DNA of 64,000 nt from Octopus sinensis (taxonomy: Eukaryota), in NCBI RefSeq assembly GCF_006345805.1, contig NC_043007.1:12710001-12774000 (forward strand). The letters run 5' to 3'. Positions 27,758 to 59,912 of the stretch are shown in pieces. The notes below the pieces were generated by a model. That model did not search any database. It was not told the origin of the DNA and saw only the letters and a program-made list of their open reading frames with translations. The stretch's first letter is position 1; every line of letters begins with the position of its first letter. Both the position numbers and the translations under genes were made by a program.

Positions 27758-27906
27758 GAATACTCACCAGAATTGCACAATATCACCAAAACAAAGAAGC
27801 CAACATTTGGTTCAAATGAAGGCATCACCATAACAGGTATCAAACACAACCGTGAAAGTTATGCTGCCAACTCAGACCATCCTCCGGCAGGATCCAATTA
27901 CCAAAA
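27758..27906 (+). CDS. PACSIN: PACSIN/syndapin exon immediately after the F-BAR domain (EYSPELHNITKTKKPTFGSNEGITITGIKHNRESYAANSDHPPAGSNYQK)
   Basis: Acceptor ttcatttttgctcAG, donor AA|GTAAGA. 149 nt, phase 0 to 2. EYSPEL...EGITITGI resembles the vertebrate PACSIN segment EWSADL...DGVTLTGI (recalled, not aligned). Confidence 0.9.
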
Positions 27907-28189
27907 GTAAGAATATCATGGTTTTTATTTGATTTTTCCTTTTCTTTTTTTTTTTGTATGTTTATTATTACTGTTTGATTTTTTTTTTTCTGCTTCATTG
28001 TTTTGAAGTCTTTTTTTTATTGTTGTTGTTGTTTTATACATCACAAATATTTATTTCAGGACCTCAACAACCTATCCATAATTGCATGTGTGTATGTATG
28101 CATAATACACACACACACACACAATATTTATATCACAGATACACACATTCACAGACACCAGATGTACATATACAACACATTTACACATC

Positions 28190-28630
28190 ATCATCATCTA
28201 ATGTCCGTTGTCCGTGCTGGCATGGGTTGGATAGTTTGACCAGGGCTGGCATGCTGGAAGACTGCACCAGACTCCAGTCTGATTTGGCATGATTTCTACA
28301 GCTGGATGCCCTTCCTAATGCCAACCACACCGAGAGTATAATGGGTGCTTTTACATGTCATTGGCACATGTACCATTTGTGTGACACCAGTATCTGCCAC
28401 AACTATGATTTTACTTGGCCTGATGGGTGTGCGTGTGTGTGTATGTATATAAAATATTTCATGTCTGCTTTACATGCTGGCATGGATTGGTCAGTCCAAC
28501 AGGATCCAATGGGCCAGAGGACCACATCTTGCTCCAGCATGTCAGTTTTAAAATGGTTTCAATGGCTGGATGCCCATTCTAATACCAACCACTTTACAGA
28601 TAGTACTAGTGTTTTTATGTTGCCCCAGCA
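28190..28630 (-). mobile_element. Two SINE C copies
   Basis: catcatcatctaatgtccg...gatgcccttcctaatgccaacc, and a more diverged copy at 28455-28630. Confidence 0.75.
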
Positions 28631-30841
28631 CAAGTGAGAGGAGGCTTCATGCAAAATATTGAGGGGCTTCCAGTATGATTGTGGGGACAGAAACAGGCTT
28701 GTTGTTGTGGAGATTCATGGCTACTCTACATATTATATAGAGCTGGTTGGGAGTGGATGGATGGAGCAAGAGAGAGAGAGAGAGAGAGAGAGAGAGAGAT
28801 GAAAAGGTGATAAAGTGCCAGGGGATATCCTCAATGTACAAGAAGGTGAACAGAAGATAGTCTGGGGACAGAAGATAAAGAATGATGGGTGAAGGTTGCA
28901 AAAGTGTGAGGGTAAGTGAGAGATGGTTATAAATTGGGGTGCATTGAATGGTGAATGAAGGTGAGGGACGAGGAAGAGAGTGATGACTGGCGGTACAGGA
29001 AGGGTGTTGACTAGCAGAATAAATAAATACAATAGGAGAGGGATTTAAGGGTGAGTGATAAAGAGTGGCAAATAAGGTTGGAGATGGTCAGTTGATGATA
29101 AGCATGAGTTTGTTGGATGTTGCTAAAGGATGAGGAAGTTCTTCGTCATTTAATGTCCATTTTCCATGCTGGCATGAATTGGATGGCTTGACAGAAGCTG
29201 ACTAGCCAGAGGACTGTACCAAATTTCACTCACACACACACACAGTTGCAAACATCACACACACACACATATATATAAACATATTTTAGCATATATATTC
29301 TTTTCTCATTATTTGCATCTTTTTCAGTGAAATTTTAATATAATGAAATATTTTTTTTTCTTTAAAGGATTTTTTTGTCCAGGTTGAAGGCCCATCCCGT
29401 AAGACTTATTCCCACTTGGTACTTGGAACTGTACAAGTTGGCAGTTAGGCTTTTTGTTCTTCAGATATCTTGACTCAGTAATACACCAAAGTACTTTTTA
29501 AAGCATTTCAAAAAAAAATTTTGTTTTTAATTTTACTTTTATTAATTCATTTCGGAGATAGGGGTGGGGAGTAATTTTTTAATAATTAATTATCAATAAT
29601 TGCCATTATCAAATAGCTCCAAAAAAGCCTCATGATAGCAAAAGAGAAAGGCCACCAGCCAGCTATCCGAACTGTTGGAGTGGGCTACACCTGCCTACCT
29701 CGGTTGAGGTAGATCCAGCCACCCCTGTTAACGGGGACAAAACTCAGATTTAAAACACTGGATGATGATAGTGACTGCCCCCTTCCTCATGGGAGTGTGC
29801 TGACCCTATGAGTAAAAGATCTGGATCTACCTACAGTTACATTGATTTTAATGCTGATACCAATATCAAAAAACACTATATTTGTATAAATTCTTACTTG
29901 AAGCTTTAGATATAAACATTTCTGTTCACAAAATAAATATGCTACGTTTTGGTTGTTGTTTATGTTAGATGGACATCAAACACCTAAGAAACCAAAACTG
30001 GTTTCTTGTGGTCTTAGTATCAAAAAAAAAAGGGAAAAAAAGCTAAAAGCAGGTTAGATATAAACTTTTTCCAGAAGTTTTCTTTTACCCCAATGTTTTG
30101 TAAGGTGGATATATTAGAAAATCAGAGATTTTTAGATCATGTGATTTGGTTTCATGAATTTTGTTTTTGCTTTGATGACATTTTTTTTTTGTCTTTGAAA
30201 TAAAGAGTTTGAGTTAGTTTAGGGATGTAGATACAAGATAATGGCAAATGGTATTCTATAAATTTTTAAAATTGAAGAAATATTTTCAAGTTTCACTTGC
30301 TGCATTGTAATCTAATGTAGTGAAATGAAAATATAAAAAGAAATTCTAATGGATTATTGTCGATTGATTGAATTATTTTAATTAAGCTGGTGTTAAGGTA
30401 TGTAATAAAGTTAGCATTAAAATTGTAATTAGAAATACATCCAGGGTGGAGAAAAATTAGTATTAGTTAAGGATTAATATAATTTTTATTATTTTGTCAA
30501 GTAAGGGACATAACTCCAGTCATGTTTTCTATTATTATGACCTCATCATTGAAGCAAACATAGACATAGTGTTGGAAGAATCACTAAGTACAAGATTACA
30601 TATTGGTTGGTTGGCAGATAGAAATAGAATTATTTGGAGAATATAATTTCATCATAATATTATTGATTGTTTGATATTATATTTATAAATCTCTTATGAA
30701 TATAGTTTTGTGTATGTGTGAATTTAATAGCACTCTATTAAGCAATAAAAGTATGGCAGCATTATTTACTTTTTACTTGCTTGGTCTGGAGGAAGGGCTC
30801 TTTTCAGACACCCCCCCCCCCGACCAGTGAGACTGATGCTG

Positions 30842-57784: not shown

Positions 57785-57933
57785 CAGTCATGGCCAAACT
57801 GCAGGCAGCAGGACTTTCTGTTTGTTCTGCCTAATGAAAAATTACCTTCAGCATTATTTAGTAATGTGGCCTGTTTGATAATAGTGCTGTGTCTCAAGTG
57901 GCCTGTTTTTCAAAAAAGATTGCCCATGTCCAG
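57785..57933. mobile_element. Possible hAT/Charlie-like MITE
   Basis: Ends cagtcatggccaaactgc and aaaaagattgcccatgtccag. Confidence 0.4.
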
Positions 57934-59805
57934 TGTAATTCCTTAGGAAAATTCAGTGTGTTCTATTTCACTAGTCTTAATTTGTTTGTTTGCATTCTTC
58001 CTTGTTGAAGAAATGTTGTCAGTGCTTTGTTGTTCTCAAACCAGTTTTGATTTACTAACTTAGCAACGAAACCTTTCAGTCACTTTCTGAAGCCATCGGA
58101 TTAGCATTCAGTTAAGCCTAGAATGTCAAAATGTTTGCTGCAAGGAATGCAGTTTTGTGTCTGTAATGCCCTGCTGTACACTGCTTCTCTACTAACCCCT
58201 TGTTTCACTCTTTATTTTATTCTTTGGTCAAAATGCTGAAGGGCAATGACCATGAATTCCTGTATGGCCTCTGGCTGATGCAAGGGAAGGACAAGATTAT
58301 TCTCTGACCAGAGATCTAGTTTGAATTATTATAACGGTGTGGATTCTGATAAAAGCACCAAAGATTCAGCTGGTCATGTTAAAACACAACAGATGCTGTC
58401 TCCCACTCAAAGACAGGATTTGTTCCACTGGACATCCACACAGTTTCCATCTCCCAGACTTACCTACCCAAAGCCATGGTAGAATGAAACTGCTCAGTGT
58501 GCTATGCATTGGGATTGAACCTGAAATCACATGGTTGCAAAACAAACTTCTTGACCACTCAGTCCTGCTTGCGTTTATTTACAAAACTTTGAAGGGTTTT
58601 GTTGTTGTTTTTTATTTTTCTTCTGTTGTTGATATTTTACAAAAACAGGAAATATTTAGATAGAAAGCAGAAAGCTGGAAATTTAAATCACAGAATGATG
58701 CCATGCGATGCTGCTATGGTAATGCTAAATTGTTCTCATGGAATAGACAGAAGTAATATTCTTGAATTATTGTGTACGATACTCTAGTAAATCATTATTT
58801 CAGTGATTGGAAGGGGTTTCGGATAACCCAACTAGAGTTTTAAGCTTTTGAACTGTGGATGATTTAAAAGTAAAAAACTGTCTGGGAGAAGAAAGATTAT
58901 ATTTCCCATCTTGTTTGTATCTCTTCACACCATATTTGGTTATCACAGAACAAAGCTTTAGAATCTAGAATTGAGATATTACAGTTGCTGAATATGAAGC
59001 TACAGAACATTCTTTCTCATCTACTTTCCTGATACCTCAAAACCTTGCCTAATTTCCAATGTAGTCGCCTTTCACTGAAACCCAGCACAAAAATACATCA
59101 TTTTCCTTCAACTTCATCATCACCTGTTTATTGTTTCAGTGTCTTTTATTCAATATTTCACAACCTACTCATTCATTAGTTAAAAAATCCATCATTTATA
59201 TTGTGGCATTTTTTTTTTTACCTCCCTCATATTAAATAATACCACTTTTAAAAATTTTTTCTTAATACTTTACATTACTAGATGACAAACTGTTCTGGAT
59301 TGGAGTTTTGAAGCATGCAGTTATTGACCCACCAGTTTACGCATGTCTTCCAATCTTCTCTTTAAAACCTTAGTTATTTTCTTTTTCTTAATTTGATTAC
59401 TGACATTATGTAATTTTCATTAGTTGTTAATAAATTAAATCTACTTGTAGCTTTTCAAAAATAAATTAGAAAGAAAAAATGTACAAATTTTCAAGTAACG
59501 TCACAGCCACAGTTAAATTACTAGTTTTTTAAAAACTTTTTTATTTGTTTTTCTTTAAATTATTTTCTAAATAATTTAATTCTATTTTAAATCTGTAATT
59601 TTACTTTTAATAGAAATATCTAATATCTCAGCTATGCATCTGTCGCAAGAGAGAGAGAAGCTGTCTGTATATGTGTGTCTGTCTATGTATGTATTCATAG
59701 ATATTTAAAGAAATACATATTTATGAAAATTATAACACAAGGTGTTAGGGTTTGTTTTTAAATGTCTGTCTGCAAACTAATCTTTCTCCTTTTAAATTTT
59801 TCTAG

Positions 59806-59912
59806 GTGAAATGTTCACTAAACTTTCTGATCCTGACGAATTGGGGTGGTGCAAAGGACGCAAAGACGGTCGAGTAGGCCTCTACCCAGCCACCTATGTG
59901 GAACCACTGTGA
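59806..59912 (+). CDS. PACSIN: Last coding exon, C-terminal half of SH3 ([34 protein letters not shown])
   Basis: Acceptor ttttaaatttttctAG in phase 1 matches the upstream donor. DExGWCKGR...GLYPAxYVE is the PACSIN SH3 C-terminus. TGA at 59910-59912. Confidence 0.95.

Follow-up and report, generated by a model that had tools for sequence, protein, structure and literature searches.

The 64 kb stretch of DNA studied here (the window, whose coordinates are used throughout) is, judging from its protein matches, the 3' part of the PACSIN/syndapin gene of Octopus vulgaris. Syndapins link membrane bending, through their F-BAR domain, to dynamin and N-WASP, through their SH3 domain, and to EHD ATPases, through Asn-Pro-Phe (NPF) motifs, in endocytosis and synaptic membrane traffic. 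Between the constitutive exon that follows the F-BAR domain (E0) and the first of the exons encoding the SH3 domain (S1) there is a series of alternative exons, each entered in phase 2, through which the number of NPF motifs in the linker is probably dosed. Public gene models use none of these exons, exon B231, exon C108, both, or exon D; two further candidates, exon A171 and an exon of 23 nucleotides (nt), are suggested by their conservation. The locus considered extends from the first post-F-BAR exon to the stop codon (27758-59912), and all of the exons and intronic boxes described lie on the + strand.

Alternative exons of the linker

The constitutive exon E0 (27758-27906; 149 nt, phase 0 to 2; cag/GAATAC ... 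CCAAAA/gtaaga, a slash marking each splice site) encodes EYSPELHNITKTKK...SNYQ plus the bases AA of a split codon. It is present in all models, is an exact match to every Octopus PACSIN model and has a ratio of nonsynonymous to synonymous substitution rates (dN/dS) of 0.03-0.05. S1 (56296-56579; 284 nt, with a phase-2 acceptor) encodes the end of the linker and the first half of the SH3 domain and also matches the models exactly, and S2 (59806-59912; 107 nt) encodes the second half, ending with TGA at 59910-59912. Between E0 and S1, A171 (31384-31554; 171 nt; cacag/ATT ... GGCAG/gtttga), B231 (38589-38819; 231 nt; ttag/GGA ... AAAAT/gtaaaa) and C108 (48883-48990; 108 nt; atag/GCA ... AAAAA/gtaatg) each have AG/GT splice sites, a length divisible by three and no stop codon in any context. 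As the exons share one phase, these modules can be added or dropped without a change of frame. The split codons formed at their junctions are AAN, AGN or ATN, with GAN in the case of the 23 nt exon, and a stop is impossible in each. All eight combinations of A171, B231 and C108 are open to the TGA at 59910-59912, carrying one to four NPF motifs and spanning 170 amino acids (aa) in length. A preliminary description of this sequence, which proposed three symmetric exons with a single NPF apiece and a fourth in the SH3 exon, eight in-frame combinations without an internal stop and junctions that cannot generate one, is borne out in all of these respects, the sites, sizes and phases being read directly from the sequence.

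There is exactly one NPF motif per exon, located at 31541 in A171, 38617 in B231, 48908 in C108 (within SYDESLNPFGEE) and 56444 in S1. The window contains 24 NPF triplets in 127,996 six-frame codons, and at this rate approximately 0.03 would be expected in 170 aa, compared with the three in the cassettes (probability of at least three, approximately 5 × 10-6). Chance NPF triplets in the window, such as those at 27464, 30844 and 33272, are in non-coding sequence outside the gene product. Three of the motifs had been classed as acidic, and this holds for NPFDE in B231, NPFGEESDDED in C108 and NPFGDPDSDD in S1. The remaining one, given as a non-acidic NPFGR, is not fixed: the residue following the NPFG of A171 is encoded by a split codon, AG/N, which becomes R when B231 or C108 follows and S when S1 or D does, and the acidity of the context is set by the next exon, e.g. 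NPFGREEPQRED.

In public gene models, all four combinations of B231 and C108 are on record across O. vulgaris, O. sinensis and O. bimaculoides. Neither exon is used in the O. vulgaris model CAI9729810 (E0-S1-S2; 540 aa, one NPF), C108 alone is used in CAI9729811 (E0-C-S1-S2; 576 aa, two NPFs) and B231 alone in CAI9729812 (E0-B-S1-S2; 617 aa, two NPFs), both also from O. vulgaris. The full chain E0-B-C-S1-S2 is found in XP_029643072.2 of O. sinensis (645 aa) and XP_014778554.1 of O. bimaculoides (560 aa), each with three NPFs, and both cassettes are present in CAI9729813 of O. vulgaris (524 aa, two NPFs), in which E0-B-C is followed by read-through into the intron and a stop after QKKK. E0 is joined to D in CAI9729814 (O. 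vulgaris; 699 aa) and XP_036362971.1 (O. sinensis; 691 aa), neither of which has an NPF, and the O. bimaculoides model XP_052827969.1 has the chain E0-D-S1-S2 (719 aa, one NPF). Splicing the exons of the window as E0-S1-S2, E0-C-S1-S2, E0-B-S1-S2, E0-B-C-S1-S2 and E0-D reproduces six public Octopus C-termini exactly. The alternative forms of O. vulgaris derive from PASA updates using Iso-Seq and RNA-seq (PMC10700109). As these transcript-based models comprise forms with and forms without B231, and likewise C108, the two exons are, on the evidence of the models, genuine cassettes.

Several exon chains, rather than the single constitutive one that would have spoken against the preliminary description, are thus represented in the public models. 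That description also depended on the exons at 31384 and 38589 being spliced in: the latter is present in models, whereas the former is in none. The frame allows the eight combinations counted at the time, or 16 with an upstream switch, but only four are documented, and the number of NPFs in the O. vulgaris and O. sinensis models ranges from zero to three, rather than from one to four, the exon D form having none.

The identity of the gene was established by a protein search with the translation of the spliced exons, for which the best matches were O. vulgaris PACSIN-like proteins (97-100% identity), followed by PACSINs from Argonauta and from other cephalopods, molluscs, brachiopods and arthropods. 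When the top protein was compared with the window using tblastn, only its last 215 residues matched, at 27758-27906, 48883-48990, 56296-56579 and 59806-59912, and hence the F-BAR exons lie upstream of the window; none was found within it using either a human PACSIN1 sequence or the O. vulgaris protein as the query. The full-length O. vulgaris and O. sinensis proteins, the C-termini of which are exactly those encoded in the window, match the Pfam FCH domain with E values of 2.7 × 10-18 and 8 × 10-18, and XP_029643072.2 matches SH3_1 with an E value of 9.5 × 10-14, this domain being encoded by S1 and S2. The SH3 domain of the window is 58-61% identical to what we take to be that of human PACSIN1, a comparison used as a lead only. 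The features marking a PACSIN/syndapin, namely an F-BAR domain (FCH), an SH3 domain and NPF motifs in the linker (one to three in the models, four with A171), were all found.

The history of these exons was studied by comparison with the orthologous loci of Argonauta hians and O. bimaculoides. The introns of Octopus and Argonauta are mostly unalignable, and the collinear blastn matches consist of exons and a handful of short blocks. On this comparative evidence C108 is an ancient cassette: its SYDE(S/T)LNPF sequence is conserved in Argonauta, cuttlefish, Haliotis, oysters and Lingula, its dN/dS relative to Argonauta is 0.08, and pairs of RefSeq isoforms from Saccostrea, Ostrea and Lingula differ by the presence of this exon. 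B231 retains its frame, splice sites and NPFDE motif in O. bimaculoides, with a dN/dS of 0.36 and a flat distribution of substitutions over codon positions (4/3/6). It is conserved within Octopus only, no counterpart being detected in Argonauta by tblastn, by blastn or by a scan of NPF-containing open reading frames (ORFs) in the orthologous introns. This implies that B231 is not a general coleoid feature; it would either have arisen recently in the Octopus lineage or have been lost in Argonauta. Of its 231 nt, 139 belong to a tandem repeat of 24 nt present in 5.8 copies at 38668-38806 (Tandem Repeats Finder, TRF), the unit of which, CAGAATGCCCCTGTCGCAATCGAG, encodes EQNAPVAI. The comparison of orthologous exons advocated in the preliminary description thus divides the three cassettes, with A171 and C108 conserved in Argonauta but B231 without a counterpart there.

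Reading through the donor of C108 (AA/GTAA; 48988-48996) adds a single K before TAA, which is how CAI9729813 ends (..DASQKKK), and a cuttlefish PACSIN model and a contig from Logan end at the equivalent place (..SAEQKK). This suggests that read-through at C108 is a second route to a form without the SH3 domain, either by intron retention or by early polyadenylation.

Exon D (49517-50394; 878 nt) is a fourth alternative exon with a phase-2 acceptor, which was not in the preliminary description. It overlaps the one stop-to-stop ORF in the window that reaches 300 aa (323 aa; 49413-50384), and contains 18 copies of a 15 nt repeat encoding PPGMG at 49661-49930 (TRF), then a conserved tail ending YYRSVETESLSDFSD. 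Its own in-frame TGA (50382-50384) is 10 nt 5' of a strong donor, CAG/GTAGGT. D is the last coding exon of CAI9729814 and XP_036362971.1, which it matches exactly, and the isoform it produces ends in a Pro-Gly-Met-rich tail and lacks both the SH3 domain and any NPF. The exon is 62% identical to that of Argonauta at the amino acid level (E value 6 × 10-65), with a dN/dS of 0.07, and both the stop and the CAG/GTAGGT donor are kept in O. vulgaris, O. bimaculoides and Argonauta. A Logan contig holds a more divergent copy, in which the stop is conserved and the ending is the same. A search against 1.84 billion representative sequences recovered only two true relatives, the results being swamped by low-complexity Pro-Gly-Met repeats. 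In XP_052827969.1, ...SDFSD is joined to S1 through a Cys codon, bypassing the TGA; as the O. bimaculoides locus at about 85420-85445 (equivalent to 50376-50400 of the window) is identical to that of O. vulgaris, such a join would need a donor other than GT. This is probably an artefact of the model, albeit one that implies reads linking exon D to S1.

Conserved candidate exons

A171 can be identified at the syntenic position in A. hians (62.5% amino acid identity, tblastn E value 1.5 × 10-21) and in O. bimaculoides, where it is 95% identical with an in-frame indel of 3 nt, a single codon. Its acceptor (tgtatatttYcacag/) and donor (GGCAG/gtttgag) are conserved, its NPFG is invariant in the three species and only one of the six frames, that corresponding to phase 2, is open in all of them. 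Substitutions relative to Argonauta are distributed 11/9/24 over the codon positions, giving a dN/dS of 0.16 at a dS of approximately 1.2, a level of constraint comparable with that of the accepted exons in the same comparison (E0, 0.05; C108, 0.08; S1, 0.25; D, 0.07). The alignment continues for approximately 90 nt past the donor, but with indels of 2 nt and 13 nt, indicating that the sequence on this side is non-coding. A171 is therefore probably, as far as comparison of the three loci can indicate, a real coding exon missing from current annotations. When its three-sequence alignment was submitted to AlphaFold2, a single helix was predicted over residues 2-51 (predicted local distance difference test score 72), which an alignment this shallow makes weak evidence. 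No match to Pfam was found for A171, and a resemblance to the 'RWWS..' F-BAR tail of an oyster PACSIN (BLASTP E value 0.016) was rejected, the second W being specific to O. vulgaris.

The largest collinear block outside the known exons, at 17020-17336, is 82% identical to Argonauta over 353 nt, which makes it more conserved than the coding exons. Within it lies a candidate microexon of 23 nt (17123-17145; phase 0 to 2), ttcacttcag/GAATACCATCCGGATCAAATTGA/gtgagt, which would encode EYHPDQI plus the bases GA and is in frame with every downstream phase-2 acceptor. The peptide is DYHPDQI in O. bimaculoides and EYHPDQI in Argonauta, in which the single change is synonymous. Joining this exon to E0 gives a stop after 32 codons, and it would consequently have to replace E0 as an alternative to it. 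The encoded peptide resembles the start of E0 (EYSPELH), and in models from Lingula, a horseshoe crab, a spider and a tick the post-F-BAR 'EY..E...' exon is tandemly duplicated, with one copy optional; the 23 nt exon resembles a shortened remnant of the first 'EY..E' copy. It corresponds to the upstream switch proposed in the preliminary description, agreeing with it in the GAN junction codon, although it falls outside 27758-59912 and, as discussed below, is absent from the models.

Complementary boxes in the introns

Conserved non-exonic blocks were tested pairwise for the ability to form RNA duplexes, and tight cores were then compared with 3184 windows covering the whole 64 kb. Two strong duplexes were found. 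In pair I, box Ia (14197..14226), part of a collinear block conserved with Argonauta, is complementary to box Ib (17040..17070), which is about 50 nt 5' of the acceptor of the 23 nt exon and inside the block at 17020-17336; the predicted free energy (ΔG) is about -29 kcal/mol. In pair II, box IIa (31946..31975), 392 nt 3' of the A171 donor, conserved with Argonauta and with the core GTGGTT(T)CCAGAACTTT, is complementary to box IIb (55862..55892), 404 nt 5' of the S1 acceptor, with a ΔG of -31.3 kcal/mol. Pair II spans 23.9 kb, in which B231, C108 and D are all contained.

In both pairs, the boxes are reciprocal best partners among the 3184 windows, with ΔG of -29 to -31 kcal/mol compared with medians of -9 to -11. 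None of the boxes is a copy of a repeat, each being unique in the window, and they are conserved in O. bimaculoides too. The orthologous blocks of Argonauta pair equally well (-30.6 kcal/mol for pair I and -30.0 for pair II), the sole difference at a paired position, in box IIb, replacing G-C with G-U. There is no double compensatory change and, as the boxes barely vary, no proof from covariation. When a query of 51 nt is used, the ΔG of pair II is -31.9 kcal/mol and that of the next candidate -31.4, which is a slim margin and does not make it a clear outlier; hence the case for pair II rests on reciprocity with the tighter cores and on conservation. No Rfam family reached its gathering score anywhere in the window, from which it follows that the conserved intronic blocks are not known RNAs.

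Long-range pairings between intronic RNA sequences regulate splicing in flies (PMC2724269) and humans (PMC8052449), and the complementary boxes of the octopus gene suggest that the choice of exons may be coordinated rather than free. An extended form of this proposal can be put forward only tentatively: the linker would be a coordinated splice module in which A171, a helix-prone segment of 57 aa ending in an NPF, and the 23 nt exon that replaces E0 are rare or cell-type-specific choices, their use being tied, through the pairing of IIa with IIb and of Ia with Ib, to omission of B231, C108 and D.

Two further conserved blocks are found just 3' of the stop codon, at 59918-59958 (41 nt, 95% identical to Argonauta) and 61346-61461 (116 nt, 74%), which are probably regulatory elements of the 3' untranslated region. 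Interspersed repeat copies are present at 1378-1559, 25281-25449, 35354-35509, 43736-43904 and 62794-62945, amongst others, and have dozens of non-collinear blastn matches in the Argonauta locus at 70-90% identity.

Proposed mechanism, alternatives and related systems

Through the one phase shared by the linker exons, the spliceosome would be able to add or drop each module in frame. The products would carry zero, one, two, three or perhaps four NPF motifs on a linker varying by up to 170 aa, and would either retain or lack the SH3 domain. In syndapins the NPFs are ligands for the EH domains of EHD proteins, which favour acidic residues after the motif (PMC13282721), in agreement with the premises of the preliminary description. 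Since the NPFs of the family bind EH domains of EHD ATPases, more of them should raise avidity for oligomeric EHD, and by analogy with mammalian and fly syndapins a higher number would give stronger or multivalent binding. The NPFs may also, by the same analogy, ease the release of the autoinhibition between the SH3 and F-BAR domains. The D isoform would be an F-BAR protein lacking the SH3 domain, not autoinhibited and unable to recruit SH3 ligands, and the complementary boxes would probably bias the joint use of exons. The 'valency code for EHD' proposed in the preliminary description is an inference drawn by analogy.

Several points weigh against the dosing of NPFs by a row of alternative exons. 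The documented isoforms are gene models, not junction counts, so they show neither how much each form is used nor in which tissues; that NPF number affects EHD binding is argued from analogy; and a literature search combining syndapin/PACSIN with cephalopod terms returned one review in which both occur, but no title or abstract on the splicing of cephalopod syndapins and turned up no binding or functional data for them. Region searches over proteins of 356-1132 aa and 112-355 aa, extended to all listed cluster members, did not find A171 in any protein, and the 23 nt exon is in no database protein or model. Both could be conserved intronic elements instead, either splicing regulators or remnants of old exons, with the real system limited to the two annotated cassettes and D. 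Neither is represented in fragments derived from Logan, the five isoforms of the Iso-Seq-based O. vulgaris annotation all lack them, the introns around them are conserved as well, non-coding flanks included, and A171, with W, C and numerous aliphatic residues, is more hydrophobic than is usual in a linker. We nevertheless regard this explanation as quite unlikely, given that A171 combines AG/GT sites, one open frame of six, a 3 nt indel and an NPF with a coding pattern of substitution (11/9/24), a low dN/dS at appreciable dS and an end to coding-type conservation at its donor, and that the peptide of the 23 nt exon is preserved through a synonymous change. In the case of B231, the lack of an Argonauta counterpart together with weaker constraint means that its NPF may matter little. 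It has some chance, though less than an even one, of being a nearly neutral young exon of the Octopus lineage that arose by expansion of the 24 nt repeat, as its composition and flat codon-position pattern would be consistent with. Against this, both O. sinensis and O. bimaculoides have it in their main RefSeq models, two isoforms of O. vulgaris use it, and its frame, splice sites and NPFDE are retained in O. bimaculoides.

Two other explanations concern the purpose and the control of the splicing. Linker splicing might mainly tune length, SH3-F-BAR autoinhibition, phosphosites or other ligands, with the NPFs riding along. A tissue-specific linker exon of human PACSIN2 is noted for carrying all four annotated phosphosites (PMC3437557), the 41 aa insert of a rat syndapin produced no visible change in the pattern of binding partners in overlays (PMC2174535), S, T, D and E are abundant in the octopus cassettes, and the largest switch, exon D, acts by removing the SH3 domain, not by adjusting the number of NPFs. 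This would leave unexplained that each cassette has exactly one NPF, invariant where the exon is conserved (in three species for A171, and from octopus to Lingula for C108), and that the number of NPFs is beyond chance; we find it somewhat doubtful. Alternatively, exon choice may be coupled by RNA pairing into a few chains, with IIa/IIb looping out B231, C108 and D, such that the whole cluster would be lost when A171 is used or when there is plain skipping, and Ia/Ib gating the 23 nt exon. In addition to the reciprocity, uniqueness and persistence in Argonauta of the pairings and the fly and human precedents (PMC2724269, PMC8052449), the blocks outside exons that are conserved and collinear with Argonauta are few, and all four boxes fall within them. 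However, models containing B231 only, C108 only and both exist, so the cluster is not all-or-none; the near-invariance of the boxes, which might equally reflect protein binding, precludes double compensatory changes, and the longer query shrinks the margin of pair II. Such coupling is conceivable, but we lean against it, and a row of alternative exons dosing NPFs remains the reading that we favour.

A linker in which NPFs are varied by splicing is an arrangement already known from rat syndapin II, and two of the three cassettes are already in public models. The rat gene has two splice sites in the linker and four variants, the 41 aa insert that distinguishes SdpII-l from SdpII-s adding a third NPF, and the tissue distribution of the variants differs (Qualmann & Kelly 2000, PMC2174535). 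Splicing between the F-BAR and SH3 domains adds an NPF in both animals. In the rat there is a single such insert, giving two NPFs or three, whereas in the octopus there are two annotated NPF cassettes and one candidate, giving one to three or perhaps four; moreover, one of the two ancient octopus NPFs (SYDESLNPF) is optional and a terminal exon removes the SH3 domain, unlike in the rat. Models of PACSIN from oysters, Lingula and other lophotrochozoans share with the octopus the post-F-BAR 'EYSPEL...' exon, the optional 'SYDE(S/T)LNPF' exon and, immediately preceding the SH3 domain, a constitutive NPF. Their isoform pairs have one NPF or two, they contain no exons resembling A171, B231 or the PGM-rich terminal exon, and their extra cassettes (e.g. 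SSTLRKISFDGFSLRKK...) have no NPF.

Drosophila Synd is likewise a protein composed of an F-BAR domain, a linker and an SH3 domain. Its NPF binds the EHD protein Past1, coexpression of which in S2 cells relocalises Synd in a partly NPF-dependent manner, interpreted by the authors as release of autoinhibition (PMC4569317). All predicted isoforms of the fly protein carry a single NPF (PMC4569317), compared with zero to three in the octopus, which implies that Synd has no splice-variable valency. The wider principle, that tissue-specific splicing of disordered segments embeds binding motifs, was set out with human PACSIN2 among the examples (Buljan et al. 2012, PMC3437557). The octopus linker shares with it cassette exons in disordered sequence that add or remove short linear motifs, although the PACSIN2 example concerns phosphosites rather than NPFs, in a vertebrate. 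As for the intronic boxes, they resemble the pairings of Drosophila (PMC2724269) and the human pairs of conserved complementary regions (PCCR; PMC8052449) in being conserved and in bracketing alternative exons at distances of kilobases to tens of kilobases. Unlike these, they are known from complementarity and conservation in three octopods alone.

What is new is the coding-type conservation of the unannotated A171 and 23 nt exons, the restriction of B231 to one lineage, the optional status of the SYDESLNPF exon across lophotrochozoan models, the conserved terminal exon lacking SH3 and the intronic boxes. These findings extend an observation made in vertebrates in 2000, and do not overturn current understanding. 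They point to a gap in annotation, as the retrieved models of three Octopus species and Argonauta lack a conserved NPF exon and a conserved microexon, and the boxes offer a cephalopod example in which long-range RNA structure can be tested directly. The Pro-Gly-Met-rich isoform lacking both SH3 and NPF, common to Octopus and Argonauta, should escape autoinhibition by the SH3 domain. At this octopus locus, in-phase cassette exons would dose short docking motifs within one gene; were the linker to prove a coordinated module, it would switch the gene among a few discrete states, with zero to four NPFs and with or without the SH3 domain.

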